Below are positions 3,052 through 57,519 of a stretch of DNA of 64,000 nucleotides, in pieces; within the stretch, counting starts at the first letter, position 1, and every line of letters starts with the position of its first letter. Where the stretch lies: positions 248,001 through 312,000 of IMG/VR virus record IMGVR_UViG_3300044796_000662; one strand, 5' to 3'. Made by a program: the position numbers and the translations under genes. The notes under the pieces were generated by a model. That model made no database searches and was not told where the DNA came from. It was given only the letters and a program-made list of their open reading frames with translations.

Positions 3052-3703
3052 TGGGGTCTTGCTCCACTAGGGAAAATCGGAAGAAGCGGTCATCCTCTCG
3101 AAACACTGTCCCACTCTTCACCGTCTGACCGGCGCGCTTGCCCTTCACGTACGTGTGCGTACGGAGGAACGTGTGCTTCTCGGAGGGAACAAGATCGGCC
3201 TCGGTGAGCAGACCCTTGTCCAGCTCCCAGAAGCGCGCGGCGAAGCGGGCGACGTGATACGCGTCTGCCTCGTTGTGGTTGAAACGTCCCTTGATGCCCG
3301 TGTCTGCGCGTGCCGCTTCCACCATGTCGCTCTTGCGCATCTCGCCCTTGCGGACGCTGGGGTCGAGCTTCGTCAGCGACTTGACCGTGGAGGGGTCGAA
3401 GTAGACGACGTCCTTGCGGTGCTGGAAGACGGCTTCGTTGACCATCACAAAAAGCGCATACGCTCCCGGTGAGAAGGTCGCACCGAAGATCGGGGATTCG
3501 ACGCCCACCGCTTCGATCTGGGGGTACGTGTCTAGCAACCTGTTGACCAGGCTGCGCAACGACATGTACCGCGTGACGAAGACCTCTTTCGTCGTGGTCT
3601 TCTGCACGCCACGTGCGATGACCCTCGCGGTTCCGAACTGCGAGGAGTCATGCACGCACCAGCCGAAGCCAGTGAGCGACGGGTCAAGTCCGAGGGTAAT
3701 CAT
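2921..3703 (-). CDS. RuvC-like Holliday junction resolvase
   Basis: MITLGLDPSLTGFGW, VGVES, HNEADA; start set at ATG 3703; 3' end overlaps the start of recA. Confidence 0.8.
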   Translation of the reverse strand: MITLGLDPSLTGFGWCVHDSSQFGTARVIARGVQKTTTKEVFVTRYMSLRSLVNRLLDTYPQIEAVGVESPIFGATFSPGAYALFVMVNEAVFQHRKDVVYFDPSTVKSLTKLDPSVRKGEMRKSDMVEAARADTGIKGRFNHNEADAYHVARFAARFWELDKGLLTEADLVPSEKHTFLRTHTYVKGKRAGQTVKSGTVFREDDRFFRFSLVEQDPNDDPHHERDHEQEGQQGTAARAAQGDQGRSQGGAQGDPEEEGS

Positions 3704-3753
3704 GGGCGAGAGTAGAGAGAGCCTTGCGGCCCCCTCTACACCCGACCTCCCGC

Positions 3754-4620
3754 TCAGACGTTGTCGAGCAGCTCCGTGAAGTCGCCGCCTGCGGCCACGT
3801 CCGAAACGGCACTGCCGCCGGCCGAGCCGAGACCGAGCTTCTCGCGAAGCGTCGGGGTGCTCATCTCGCGGAACGGCACGAGCTTGTCGTAGAAGCCGAC
3901 CGCCTTCTCCAGGACGACCTGCTTGAACTTGTCGCTCTTGAGCCACGTCGCCGGACCGTCTGCGGCCGGCTCGATCTGCTGGTACTTCTCGTCCTTGCAC
4001 TCCAGGAGGAGATCCTGGTTGGCGATGCCGGCGCCGTTGCGCACGAGGCCCATGTTGACCTTCCAGATCAGGTCGTAGCGCTTCGAGCTGAAGCGCCAGG
4101 GCATGATGCGCCAGTTGGCGAAGTTCGCCTTGTCGATCTCACCCTTGCGGTTGGTCGGGTAGATGATCAGGAGCGTCGAGAAGTACGTCTTCGGCGCTTC
4201 CAGCTTCTTCCAGACCTCGTCCTCCTCTGCCGTGCCCTTGCCGAGCCGGGAGAGAACGAAGCCCAGTCCGTCGCCACCGTAGTGAGCGCTGAACTTTTTG
4301 AAGCGGACCTCGGTCAGGTCCAGCTTGTCCACCTGCGTGAGCTGATCGACCGTCTTGCCGAGGGCCGCCGCGCGATCCGCGAGGGCCTTGGCAGCGATCT
4401 TCGCTCGCTCTTCTGCGGGCATGCTCGGGCTCTTCTTCCGAGCCTTCGCGACGGTCGCCACATCCACCGGGTGGAAGTAGATGATGCTGGCGCGGTCCGT
4501 CTTGCCCTTCTGTCCCTTGTACCACTCGATGTCGGAGTCGGACTTTGCCGCCTTCCGGTCTTCCTCATCGAGGCCAAGGTCGCTCTCGTACTCCGAATCC
4601 ATCTCTTCTGTGCTCATCAC
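3754..4620 (-). CDS. Putative single-stranded DNA-binding protein (gp32-like)
   Basis: Recombination context, aromatic/basic core, Gly/Ser linker and acidic tail DFTELLDNV. Confidence 0.5.
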   Translation of the reverse strand: MMSTEEMDSEYESDLGLDEEDRKAAKSDSDIEWYKGQKGKTDRASIIYFHPVDVATVAKARKKSPSMPAEERAKIAAKALADRAAALGKTVDQLTQVDKLDLTEVRFKKFSAHYGGDGLGFVLSRLGKGTAEEDEVWKKLEAPKTYFSTLLIIYPTNRKGEIDKANFANWRIMPWRFSSKRYDLIWKVNMGLVRNGAGIANQDLLLECKDEKYQQIEPAADGPATWLKSDKFKQVVLEKAVGFYDKLVPFREMSTPTLREKLGLGSAGGSAVSDVAAGGDFTELLDNV

Positions 4621-52499: not shown

Positions 52500-53252
52500 T
52501 CACGGCGCGAAGACGAAATCGAAGATGGGCTTGCCGGCGGACAGATCCTTCGGCACGTCGTGGCTGTTGGCGGTCTCCTTGGCCTGCTTGACCGCGTGCT
52601 GGAGCTTCTCGATCCGAGCGAGCAGGAGATCCTTCTGGTCCATCGGCATCGCCCCGGAATACTTGATGGTCTTCCAGGTGCCGGTGATCTTGTCCTCCGT
52701 AATGAGCTGGACCTGCGCCGGGTGCTCCTTCGAGCCCGGGTGCATCACGAGAGGCACCTGGAGCTTCTTCGTGCGGACCGTCTCGGTCGGCTGCGTCGCG
52801 TAGAGGCTCTGCTCCTTGTCGAGCGTCCACTTCTCGGCCGGGTCGAGCGTCGGCATCTTCTTGACCTCCGTGTAGAGGTCGTCGAGCTGGTGCCCGAGCC
52901 AGAGCAGGTACGTGACCGGGGCATCCTTCAGGATCGTCTTGCCCTCCACGACCACGTCCGCCTTCGCGGAGCAGTTCGTGACGTCGCGCTGGAAGGTCAT
53001 GTCGAACAGCTCGGTCTGCTCCTTCTGAATGGTCTTCAGGAGGACGGCCGTGTTCTGCTGGACGTTCTGGCGCTCGTCCGGCAGCATCTCGTGCAGGTTC
53101 GACTCCGGGTTCGCGTCGCGAGCCGACCACGTCTTCACGTGGCCGCTGAAAAGCGCCGGCTTCTGGAACGTGTGGTAGATGGCGGTCAGCTTCTCGGCCA
53201 CCTTCGTCTTGAGGCCCGACTCGATGGCAAGAACGTGATGCAGCTTCGACAT
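52500..53252 (-). CDS. Uncharacterised coiled-coil protein
   Basis: MSKLHHVLAIE...TNCSAKADVVVEG...LLARIEKLQHAVKQAKETAN. Confidence 0.8.
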   Translation of the reverse strand: MSKLHHVLAIESGLKTKVAEKLTAIYHTFQKPALFSGHVKTWSARDANPESNLHEMLPDERQNVQQNTAVLLKTIQKEQTELFDMTFQRDVTNCSAKADVVVEGKTILKDAPVTYLLWLGHQLDDLYTEVKKMPTLDPAEKWTLDKEQSLYATQPTETVRTKKLQVPLVMHPGSKEHPAQVQLITEDKITGTWKTIKYSGAMPMDQKDLLLARIEKLQHAVKQAKETANSHDVPKDLSAGKPIFDFVFAP

Positions 53253-53325
53253 GGTGGTCTCCGATCCGATTTGGGTCTGTGGGTCAGTAGTACACCGGAC
53301 CCCCACCCCTTCAGGACCGTCAACG

Positions 53326-53448: not shown

Positions 53449-53847
53449 ATGTCCGTCCTGCTCCGGTTGCCCCTCTACATCGAGCCCGCCCTTGCACTCG
53501 TTCCCACGCCGACCCCCGAGCCGGCCGAGGAAGACCTCACGTGGCCCGAGGGTGAGGAACCCGTGCGGCCAAGGACCCGCGGCGAGTGCGAGGATGCCCC
53601 GCGCCCGTGCCCGTGGGTCTCGTGCAAGCAGCACCTCTTCTGGGAATACCTGAAGCACCATCCGGAGGCGACGGTCGAAACGATGAAGCACTCGTGCGTG
53701 CTGGACATCGCCGACGAGGGCGGCATGACCCTGGAAGATGTCGGCGAGATCTTCGGGCTCACCCGAGAGCGCATCCGACAGCTCGAAACCGATGCCCTGC
53801 GGAAGCTCAAGAAGCGCCCGCAGTTGATGCAGTACCGGGCCGAGTAG
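53449..53847 (+). CDS. Sigma70 region-4 HTH protein with Cys cluster
   Basis: RPCPWVSCKQHL...TLEDVGEIFGLTRERIRQLE..ALRKL. Confidence 0.82.
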   Translation: MSVLLRLPLYIEPALALVPTPTPEPAEEDLTWPEGEEPVRPRTRGECEDAPRPCPWVSCKQHLFWEYLKHHPEATVETMKHSCVLDIADEGGMTLEDVGEIFGLTRERIRQLETDALRKLKKRPQLMQYRAE

Positions 53848-54576: not shown

Positions 54577-54922
54577 AAAATGAGATGGGTGCGCCTCCCC
54601 TTGCGGTTTGGCGCACCCGTCCCCGAAACGACCAAGCCTTGACCCCGAAGGGCCTCAGCTCGCCCGTTTCCACGAAACGAACAGGAGCGGATGTCATGCC
54701 TGCGGATGCGGATTGGTGGTCCACACTCTTGAGCACCACTTGACCCCACCTGTCTTATCGGTGGTAGAGAGCCAGTAAGGCGCCGCTTTTCCACGCATTA
54801 GGCTCAAAACTTCTGGGCCCAACCGTGGTGGAGATGAGGGGCTCTCGGTGCGAACCGGGGCCTTTCATCAGTCCCTGCTAAATTGTCAATGAACGGAGAC
54901 GCCCCGAAGGGCGGCTCGTTAG

Positions 54923-54994
54923 ATCCAGGAGGGGGAGTTGAACCCACCGTAGCGAGTTTCAGAGTCTCGCGTCCTACCGTTGGACGATCCTGGA
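54923..54994 (-). tRNA. tRNA-Gln(CTG)
   Basis: Loop CTCTGAA. Confidence 0.8.
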
Positions 54995-55045
54995 ACAGCG
55001 ATGCCGTCTTCTGATTCGATCTGATCTGGGTACTGCTTGACCTAG

Positions 55046-55117
55046 TGCGCCCGGAGGGACTTGAACCCTCACTTCAACGGGTAAGAGCCGCGTATGCTGC
55101 ATTGACATCACAGGCGC
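55046..55117 (-). tRNA. tRNA-Lys(CTT)
   Basis: Loop CTCTTAC. Confidence 0.78.
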
Positions 55118-55125
55118 ATTGACTG

Positions 55126-55198
55126 TGGGAGGCACGGGAGTTGAACCCGCATCTTGGGACTTAAAAGGAACCTGCTCTACCGATTGAGCTAACCTCCC
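55126..55198 (-). tRNA. tRNA-Lys(TTT), weak anticodon stem
   Basis: Loop CTTTTAA. Confidence 0.78.
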
Positions 55199-55249
55199 AG
55201 CGACGTGGTAGGGCAGGTCTGTTTGAGTTGAGTGTGCATGGTCTTGTGT

Positions 55250-55336
55250 TGGTGGAGCCGTGCGGAATCGAACCGCCTAGCGCAGAGGCCCGACGTTTAC
55301 AGCGTCAGTCGCCTTCCAAGGACGAACCCCGACTCC
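55250..55336 (-). tRNA. tRNA-Tyr(GTA)
   Basis: Loop CTGTAAA, long variable arm, CCA. Confidence 0.82.
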
Positions 55337-55473
55337 AGAGGGGATATGGAGGATCGGAGTTCTGATAGCTCTCTCGGTTCATCATCGGATACACGTCTCC
55401 TGTGATTCCAAGGAACACGCCGGGCAGATCCCGAGCGTCGGATTCCTCAGATTCGCGAATTTTTCGAGCCCTG

Positions 55474-55667
55474 AAACGACGAAGGCCGCCACCGGGGTTC
55501 CCGGGGCGGCCTTTTGCACGAGCACTTGCTCGGCTTCGGACCGCCCCTTACTCTCCCACCTCCGGCTTGGCTTGATTCAAGGAGGTGGGATATGCGGGCG
55601 TGTGGAGAATCTGGGCGAACTGGAGGGTCTGATCGACGCTACCGCGCAGAACGCAAGATCCCGCCAT
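55474..55667 (-). promoter_or_regulatory. Putative leader-peptide attenuator ahead of tRNA array
   Basis: 39-aa uORF 55548-55667; GGGGCGGTC immediately after the stop is complementary to the terminator 5' arm; terminator 55474-55513. Confidence 0.55.
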
Positions 55668-55827
55668 CGCCTTGAGCGATTTGGCAGACCTTGATTCGAG
55701 CGACCAGCGTGTAGACACAGCGTTCTCCGTTGCACCGTGATGGTGCGTTGACTCTTGCTTGTATACGGGCACCACGAAAAGCGCGCAAGGACTTTTCTTG
55801 ACCCTCGCGCATTTTCTCCCGCACCTT

Positions 55828-56493
55828 TCACGCGGGGGTCGGGAAGACGGGCGCGACGGGCGACCCGGCCGCGAGCTGCACGATGGTGATCCCGGTCACG
55901 TTCGGGAACGGCGAGAGTGCGGCGAGGCTGATGCCCACGCCGAGTTCGAGAGCCACTGGCAGGAACGGCGTCCACGCCGTGGTCGGGCTGGTGGTGAACG
56001 GCACGCTGGTTCCGTTGACCGTGAGCGACACGTACGGCTTCCGCGCGTCCCACGAGAACACAATGATCGCCGGGGTACCCGCGACGCCGGCGGCACCGCT
56101 CGGAACGGCCGCTGCGACCAAGTTGCCATAGATGTCCGTGATCTTCGCGCCGACGCGGTTCGAAGAGTCGAGGTAGATGCCGCAGTACCCGAGCGGCGTC
56201 GAGGCGTTGTCCACCGAGAACGCGAGCGAGTACGCCGTGCCCGCGGTCGGCAGAATGACCTGCGCGTTCATGATCCCGCAGACGCCACCGTAGGCTTGGG
56301 GGACATTGAGCGAGGTGAGGTCTGTCTCACCAAGACCTCGGCGGATCAGCGAACCGCCCATGTTCTTCTGAACCGGGGCCACGGTGTAGGGGGTGGCTGC
56401 CTGTCCAACACCGCGCAGAGTCGGACCTGCCGAAACCGTGGGCCAGTTGGGCAGCGCGAGGAACCCTGCCGGGGAGATGATGAAATCGGACAT
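55828..56493 (-). CDS. Beta-rich (LamG-like) possible virion protein
   Basis: G/A/T/V-rich, IVFSWD...LTVNG; SD GAGGAG. Confidence 0.55.
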   Translation of the reverse strand: MSDFIISPAGFLALPNWPTVSAGPTLRGVGQAATPYTVAPVQKNMGGSLIRRGLGETDLTSLNVPQAYGGVCGIMNAQVILPTAGTAYSLAFSVDNASTPLGYCGIYLDSSNRVGAKITDIYGNLVAAAVPSGAAGVAGTPAIIVFSWDARKPYVSLTVNGTSVPFTTSPTTAWTPFLPVALELGVGISLAALSPFPNVTGITIVQLAAGSPVAPVFPTPA

Positions 56494-56545
56494 GTCGGTC
56501 TCCTCTACCTGGGAGGACATAAGGTTCTTTTGCGGCGCACGAGGT

Positions 56546-57196
56546 GTGAACCCCTACGACGTTCCGGCGCCTGACTCGGTGGAGGAGGTGCGCAAGCTCC
56601 TCATCGAAGCCTCGCAACCCTCCTCCACCAAGACCGCCGCCGAAGCTCCGCGCTTCACGTGCCGCGTGTTCAACAGCCCGTGGGATCAGTTCGTCGAGCT
56701 GTGGGCTCCCCGCATCTACGCGTTCGTCGGCCACGCCCTCGGACCCTACGGCAAGACCCCCTTGCCCGAGATCAAGCGGATGCCCGACGCGGAGCACACC
56801 TCCGGCGCAACCGCCAGCTTCCAACCGGACACCGGCCAAGTCCGACTCTCAACCTCCGTTGAGGGCAAGGCAGGCCAAACGTTGGAGAAGCTCACCCACG
56901 AGTTCACGCACGGCTCCCTCGCCCTGTTCCCCGAGGGCGACGCCTTCTACGAGGAAGGCTTCGTGGACTACAGCGTGTGGGTCATGGCACACGCTCCCGC
57001 CTGGGAGCCCTACCGCGATCAGATGATCGAGGCCGCTGCCTTCAACATCACCATGCGCCGCGAGCGCGCGATGATGGACATGTCGGACTGGGATCGCAAG
57101 CGTTGGGCTGGCGGGCTCTACGCTAGCCTCTCGCGTGGCCCGCTCGTGATCGCGAGCCTCAAGCAGCGCAAGATGGAAGGCACGCTCTACTGGTAA
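56546..57196 (+). CDS. HExxH zinc metallopeptidase-like
   Basis: LTHEFTHG...YEEGF. Confidence 0.7.
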   Translation: MNPYDVPAPDSVEEVRKLLIEASQPSSTKTAAEAPRFTCRVFNSPWDQFVELWAPRIYAFVGHALGPYGKTPLPEIKRMPDAEHTSGATASFQPDTGQVRLSTSVEGKAGQTLEKLTHEFTHGSLALFPEGDAFYEEGFVDYSVWVMAHAPAWEPYRDQMIEAAAFNITMRRERAMMDMSDWDRKRWAGGLYASLSRGPLVIASLKQRKMEGTLYW

Positions 57197-57270: not shown

Positions 57271-57519
57271 GTGTATATACTGCACGGCGTCGAGAAGGAC
57301 ACCCTCTACACGGGGATCTCGAACCGTATCGCCTTCCGCGTGCGTGCTCACAACACCGGCAAGGGCGCGCGGTATACACGCACAGGCGGACCCTGGAAGG
57401 TCGTCTTCCTCCTGCCGGTCGCCTCGAAGAGCGAGGCACTCAAGACCGAGTGGCGCATCAAGCAGATGCCCCGAACTGAGAAGCTCAGGATCATTCAGCA
57501 ACGCGCCGTGGACGGGTGA
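57271..57519 (+). CDS. GIY-YIG nuclease
   Basis: YIL...LYTG...R..HN.GKGARYT...EALKTE..IK. Confidence 0.85.
   Translation: MYILHGVEKDTLYTGISNRIAFRVRAHNTGKGARYTRTGGPWKVVFLLPVASKSEALKTEWRIKQMPRTEKLRIIQQRAVDG

Follow-up and report, generated by a model that had tools for sequence, protein, structure and literature searches.

A putative ribosome-coupled attenuator with a leader open reading frame encoding all 20 amino acids precedes the tRNA gene array of a huge phage

Introduction

Bacterial operons for amino-acid biosynthesis, such as trp, his, leu, thr, pheA and ilv, are typically controlled by leader-peptide attenuators (for pheL, see PMC3082878), in which a short translated leader is followed by a terminator and an overlapping antiterminator, and a ribosome at the stop codon masks the 5' strand of the antiterminator. 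Such leaders generally span 14-32 codons and carry a cluster of codons for the cognate amino acid at a fixed place relative to region 1, together with a 1:2 anti-antiterminator that gives termination when the leader is not translated. A related logic exists in uORF attenuators that sense ribosome inhibition in front of resistance or stress genes, including B. subtilis vmlR (PMC9226507) and E. coli toiL-topAI (PMC12121999), as well as candidates from a prediction survey (PMC5314783). In these systems, a stalled or slowed ribosome in a uORF allows the antiterminator to form and gives read-through, making them general translation-stress sensors rather than sensors of one amino acid, although the uORFs are very short and stall at particular codons with particular drugs, and toiL works through Rho. 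In the pyrBI/pyrE attenuators, the outcome appears to depend on how closely the ribosome follows RNA polymerase, with close coupling preventing the terminator, while T-box riboswitches, which as a rule control synthetase or amino-acid genes, link a terminator/antiterminator leader to tRNA status by binding uncharged tRNA directly, without a leader ORF.

Phage tRNA arrays are usually discussed as codon-usage aids or as decoys against tRNA-cleaving defences, whereas the control of their expression is essentially unknown. In this article, a locus at the head of the tRNA array of a huge peat-soil phage is analysed, in which a leader ORF containing all 20 amino acids and a predicted terminator/antiterminator RNA switch lie in front of the tRNA genes. 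The comparative evidence supports a ribosome-mediated transcription attenuator that probably raises tRNA transcription whenever translation slows down, although this mechanism is inferred from sequence rather than from expression data. Full-text literature searches found no description of an attenuator before tRNA genes or of an all-amino-acid leader, and within the scope of these searches this element would be the first of either.

Genomic context and related loci

The analysed stretch of 64,000 nucleotides, referred to as the window, comprises bases 248001-312000 of a single 362,937-bp contig with 62.6% G+C, whose DNA occurs in peat metagenomes. It holds 52 tRNA genes and a tmRNA gene, all on the minus strand between 55336 and 21102 and all downstream of the leader, which together supply tRNAs for all 20 amino acids. 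The first cluster under the leader (54922-55336, minus strand) consists of Tyr(gta), Lys(ttt), Lys(ctt) and Gln(ctg). The element is single-copy in the genome.

Public phage records gave no DNA or protein match for the leader or the upstream gene, and the upstream 230-aa protein found no relatives in IMG/VR. In contrast, the divergently transcribed neighbour gene (56477-57196, plus strand), which encodes a conserved HExxH (THEFTHG) protein without a Pfam or PHROG family, found 32 IMG/VR loci (denoted here by L numbers) from contigs of up to 529 kb, in which the tRNA array starts next to the same gene with the same order, Tyr-Lys-Lys-Gln-Asn. A profile of the 3' part of the leader found the element in 24 distinct relatives, a protein word search added a close relative (L040, 86% identical DNA) and an NCBI assembly contig (L041), and L028 has a divergent copy, giving 27 related contigs. 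A pattern scan of IMG/VR found the element only on contigs already known, and it was absent from 120 pattern hits in bacterial genomes, although the latter scan was incomplete.

Eight of the 32 anchored relatives show no element in the 3-kb flank. Five of these have no tRNA in the flank, among them L019, the shorter-flank copy of the contig of L006, where the element lies further from the anchor gene. L020 has only a tRNA-Gln about 1.7 kb away with no leader-like ORF upstream of it, and L028 carries the divergent copy mentioned above. In L023 (reverse strand, about 3665-3864), a 53-aa uORF with 19 amino acids (no Trp) is followed by tRNA-Lys about 40 nt after its stop, with no terminator hairpin, and it may be a decayed or simplified form of the leader.

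Architecture of the leader

The features described in the earlier note, namely a possible promoter, a uORF whose TAA is immediately followed by a segment complementary to the 5' arm of a strong hairpin, and that hairpin itself, are all present on the minus strand. The promoter-like site consists of a -35 element, TTGCGC (55788-55783), and a -10 element, TATACA (55765-55760), separated by 17 nt. Although a simple sigma-70 scan does not call this promoter, a CTTGAC/CTTGCx motif preceded by an A/T-rich stretch, a spacing of 17-18 nt and a TA-start -10 hexamer are conserved in relatives. L001 has TTGCGC-17-TATAAA, while L040 has an identical -35 element and keeps CCGTATA. The -35 element lies in the 3' arm of a hairpin (55811-55782) just after the upstream 230-aa gene. 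In L040, the 5' arm of this hairpin has changed, but an inverted repeat with the unchanged -35 arm remains, and the terminator-like hairpin could also occlude the promoter. A 5'UTR hairpin (55732-55746), GCACC-atcac-GGTGC, shows a compensatory change to GCATC/GATGC in L040.

The leader ORF extends from GTG 55718 to TAA 55548 and encodes 56 aa, with a Shine-Dalgarno GGAG at 55728-55725, six nt upstream. The earlier note had assigned a 39-aa uORF, but the ATG at 55667 is an internal Met, and the conserved start is GTG 55718. The last third of the uORF contains a hairpin, Ha (55554-55590; TCCCACCTCC / GGAGGTGGGA), whose 3' arm is Shine-Dalgarno-like. Among relatives, Ha spans 7-14 bp, ends 3-7 nt before the stop and is mostly CCCACCTCC/GGAGGTGGG, the codons for PTS and PEVG, whereas L002, L003 and L035 have other sequences that still pair. 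GAGG lies exactly 8 nt before the stop in 21 of 24.

The stop codon TAA (55550-55548) is followed at once by region 2, GGGGCGGTC (55547-55539), and together (55539-55550) they form the 5' strand of the proposed antiterminator. Region 2 is complementary, with one G-U, to GGCCGCCCC (55511-55503) within region 3 (55500-55513), the 5' arm of the predicted terminator hairpin, whose 3' arm is region 4 (55482-55496). A small hairpin, Hb (55519-55532; CGAGC-AAGT-GCTCG), is enclosed by the 2:3 helix. Its stem is kept and its loop changed in L040, and the L001 equivalent is GAGTC-TTT-GACTC. The predicted terminator hairpin (55513-55482) is GC-rich, with 12 bp and -28 kcal/mol, and is followed by the T-rich tail CGTCGTTTCAGG (55470-55481), conserved as (A/C)GTCGTTT(C/T)AGG. 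The T-tract is, however, interrupted, and a simple terminator scan did not call this hairpin. The 139-nt 3' part of the leader folds with z = -5.6.

A spacer (55337-55469) separates the predicted terminator from tRNA-Tyr. It is about 80% identical in L040, and blocks of it recur in L002 (GAATCYGACGC, GATCTGCCC, CACAGGAGACGTGTA, GAGAGAGCTATC), while it is absent in L001, L021 and L037. It has no conserved ORF, no promoter-like motif and no Rfam match; a possible ORF (GGAG-N4-GTG at about 55418) was rejected because L040 has an early stop in that frame. Across the 26 relatives' leaders scanned, tRNA-Tyr or Lys follows after 17-414 nt, the first genes called by ARAGORN are Tyr-Lys-Lys or Lys-Lys, with Gln next in 23, and no spacer has a promoter-like motif. 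In L001, L021 and L037, the spacer is only 17-22 nt, so that, as inferred from sequence only, the first tRNA can only be reached by transcription through the hairpin.

Evidence for translation of the leader

All 24 aligned relatives keep an open frame of 49-76 codons, mostly 50-59, with a GTG or ATG start, ending in a stop that abuts region 2, except in L003, where the stop is 11 nt later and still covers region 2. The frame is open in all 27 leaders, while the other two frames are broken. A GGAG/AGGA-type site lies about 2-7 nt before the start in about 18 of 24 relatives, further away in two, and is absent in three. Indels between close pairs are multiples of three, with one of 3 nt in L004/L024, indels of 3, 12, 3, 3, 3 and 3 nt in L032/L033, and one of 6 nt between the window and L040. 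The pN/pS ratio is 0.29 for the window versus L040 and 0.45-0.9 for other pairs. Codon-position counts on distant pairs were alignment noise, and only close pairs were used.

Outside a few motifs the peptide is poorly conserved, with a mean column identity of 24% and substitutions spread evenly over codon positions, and its GC3 (0.69) is well below that of the phage's genes (0.82-0.93). No family was found in Pfam for the 75-aa version or in PHROGs for the 54-56-aa versions, and relatives occur only as hypothetical proteins on huge-phage contigs. The pattern is of a frame that must be read and a product that matters little, although translation itself is inferred.

Amino-acid completeness of the leader peptide

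With the conserved start, the window peptide contains all 20 amino acids rather than the 19 counted in the earlier note. The same applies to 22 of the 24 aligned relatives as well as L028, L040 and L041, making 25 of 27, while the other two contain 19. Counting internal residues only, so that an elongator Met is required, 21 of 24 are complete. The probability of completeness is 0.024 for equal-length pieces of this phage's long genes and 0.028 for stop-free nucleotide shuffles of each leader, and the observed frequency is 30-40 times above chance per sequence. Neutral replacement at the observed divergence, starting from a complete ancestor, predicts about 1 of 23 relatives remaining complete.

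Trp, internal Met and Tyr each occur exactly once in 23 of 24 leaders (twice or not at all in the rest), and His, Phe, Asp, Asn and Cys occur mostly once. Their positions differ between lineages, the single Met sitting at 19 different distances from the C-terminus, indicating that selection acts on presence, not on place. The window has 38 distinct codons, far above the phage's biased genes (28.1 +/- 3.1) but not above a compositional shuffle (36.1 +/- 2.3, P = 0.25), whereas half of the relatives exceed that null at P < 0.05. The view of the earlier note that diversity is not clearly above chance holds only for codon counts in the window alone, not for amino-acid completeness across the family. 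In the window, 54 of 55 internal codons can be read by a phage-encoded tRNA, which is not discriminating.

The predicted RNA switch

Across relatives, the predicted terminator hairpins have dG of -14 to -33 kcal/mol, mostly GAAA loops and the conserved T-rich tail. Compensatory changes are found in nine of 14 consensus pairs, counting Ha and the terminator together.

The alternative 2:3 helix is supported by duplex energies, as cognate duplexes average -19.3 kcal/mol, against -16.8 for region 2 of one phage with region 3 of another (0 of 20,000 permutations as low) and -9.05 +/- 0.59 for shuffled region 2. RNAalifold on a MAFFT alignment of region 2 to region 3 gave no structure, because a 1-bp helix-length polymorphism (TAGGGCGG vs TAGGCGG) puts the columns out of register, and pairs were instead counted per position, anchored on the invariant GGCGG:CCGCC core. 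Covariation appears at the flanking positions (offset -3: GC 14, AT 7; offset -4: five pair types; offset +2: GC 23, AT 1 in L027), and in the core 88% of cells are paired, against 26-52% when the partner is slid by 1-3 nt, with no column shuffle reaching the observed value. The stop codon is itself part of the helix. The families TAGGGCGG/CCGCCCTG and TAGGCGG/CCGCCTRG differ by one G:C pair removed from both strands, and the stop codon stays paired in both. Although these tests are not phylogeny-corrected, at least five independent compensatory events are visible.

At equilibrium with the whole RNA, the terminator wins in most leaders whatever the ribosome position, P(3:4) being about 1 for the window, so that equilibrium folding with ribosome masks does not discriminate between states. 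In the co-transcriptional model, with the RNA ending before region 4, the 2:3 helix is predicted to form with P of about 1 in 23 of 24 leaders when region 2 is free, and with P of 0 when a ribosome footprint is placed on the stop. Read-through therefore rests on an assumed kinetic trap. A trp-like 1:2 state is not supported, since in the truncated RNA region 2 pairs upstream with a mean probability of 0.04 and with region 3 at 0.96.

Proposed mechanism and comparison with described attenuators

The favoured explanation, held with reasonable though not complete confidence, is a ribosome-mediated transcription attenuator whose leader ORF reports overall decoding speed rather than the supply of one amino acid, consistent with the general translation-stress sensor inferred in the earlier note. 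Transcription would start at the conserved promoter-like site, and the 56-codon uORF would be translated. As RNA polymerase moves on, region 2 would pair with region 3 unless covered by a ribosome, and this default helix would prevent the terminator, giving read-through into tRNA-Tyr-Lys-Lys-Gln and perhaps beyond. If the ribosome reaches the stop codon in time, it would occupy or melt region 2, the terminator would form, and transcription would end at about 55474-55481. A shortage of any charged tRNA, or any general slowing of ribosomes, would thus delay arrival at the stop and raise tRNA gene transcription, which explains why the sensing residues need no fixed position and why all 20 are kept. 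More tRNA would not, however, cure amino-acid starvation. Ha may act as a pause hairpin synchronising polymerase and ribosome, and its Shine-Dalgarno-like arm could help hold the terminating ribosome. The only RNA library with this DNA gives a 16.9-kb contig, most likely DNA carry-over or a long assembly, which is uninformative on transcript starts, ends or strand. A GC-rich hairpin directly after tRNA-Gln (about 54915-54893, minus strand; GAGCCGCCC-TTCG-GGGCGTCTC), which may end the first tRNA transcription unit, and the 34-kb length of the array, with protein genes in between, suggest that the leader may control only the first tRNA cluster.

The element shares with the amino-acid operon attenuators the translated leader (here inferred), the predicted terminator with an overlapping antiterminator, the predicted masking of the antiterminator by a ribosome at the stop codon, a stop-to-terminator distance of about 70-80 nt and a hairpin at the end of the leader where a pause hairpin would be. 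It differs from them in having no run of regulatory codons, no supported 1:2 state, a predicted default of read-through rather than super-attenuation without translation, a leader of 50-60 codons, tRNAs as the regulated genes and a phage as carrier. Compared with the vmlR and toiL uORFs, the logic is the same, but the uORF is long and compositionally complete, the predicted terminator is of the intrinsic type, and the output is tRNA genes. In contrast to pyrBI/pyrE, timely arrival of the ribosome would favour termination. No T-box match was found in Rfam 15, where the only matches at E <= 10 between 55337 and 55830 are three far below their gathering scores, namely two miRNA models and RcsR1. 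If the mechanism holds, the element offers a compact natural sensor of global translation speed that could be reused in synthetic biology.

A more speculative and rather doubtful possibility is that the leader is a purpose-built probe with one of each amino acid, which lets the phage detect depletion or cleavage of any host tRNA, for instance by anticodon-nuclease defence systems or host shut-off, and answer by switching on its own tRNA set. This set begins with Tyr, Lys, Gln and Asn, which are classic nuclease targets, and the element would then be a cis-acting counter-defence and homeostasis circuit for translation capacity.

Alternative explanations

An attenuator responding to a specific event at the end of the leader, rather than to general decoding speed, is possible but unlikely. 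In this reading, the conserved C-terminus (..PTS-x3-4-AN-PEVG-T-stop) and the GAGG before the stop would make the ribosome arrest or linger at termination, depending on release/recycling factors, free 30S subunits or a small molecule, in the manner of TnaC or the prfB site. The C-terminal motif and the fixed GAGG-to-stop spacing are indeed the best conserved parts of the peptide and RNA, the stop codon sits inside the 2:3 helix, and the 5' arm of Ha resembles the anti-Shine-Dalgarno sequence, CACCTCC occurring in 10 of 24. The conserved codons are, however, also the two arms of Ha, so RNA pairing alone can explain their conservation, and L002, L003, L006, L021 and L035 have different end sequences but keep a hairpin. 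Moreover, this reading does not explain why all 20 amino acids are kept, with movable singletons.

It is somewhat less likely that the locus is an ordinary small protein gene with its own terminator, with the downstream tRNAs expressed by leaky read-through or RNA processing and with the complementarity to region 2 and the amino-acid completeness as side effects of an unknown protein function. Gene callers list the ORF as a hypothetical protein in several contigs, pN/pS is below 1, and the terminator is thermodynamically dominant, but the low conservation of the peptide, the lack of a Pfam or PHROG match, the low GC3, the covariation of the 2:3 helix with the stop codon in register and the fixed position in front of the tRNAs weigh against this view. 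An untranslated structured RNA or DNA element with an accidental open frame, for example a processing or stability hairpin for the tRNA precursor, appears very unlikely. The RNA folds far better than shuffles and translation is not experimentally proven, yet the frame is open in all 27 leaders, indels are in frame, start codons have Shine-Dalgarno sites, no Rfam family matches, and completeness would be meaningless for a non-coding RNA.

Neighbouring genes and additional tRNA genes

A 132-aa ORF with a sigma-70 region 4 domain (E = 8e-12) and gene-like GC3 (0.87) lies inside the tRNA array on the opposite strand (53449-53847, plus strand) and may be a phage sigma or anti-sigma-type factor. A DUF7873 protein inside the array (52500-53306, minus strand) has 37-43% identical relatives in Gordonia, Arthrobacter and Pseudanabaena phages, and a stand-alone 82-aa GIY-YIG nuclease ORF (57271-57519, plus strand) lies beside a 936-aa ORF. 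The whole genome has only two further tRNA-like genes, far from the array and outside the window (L120:552-704; genome C1:21351-21503; Rfam 54-57 bits). One has an odd anticodon loop, and the other has anticodon CTA, an amber-suppressor type labelled 'Pyl' by ARAGORN, while most relatives end the leader in TAG and the window uses TAA.
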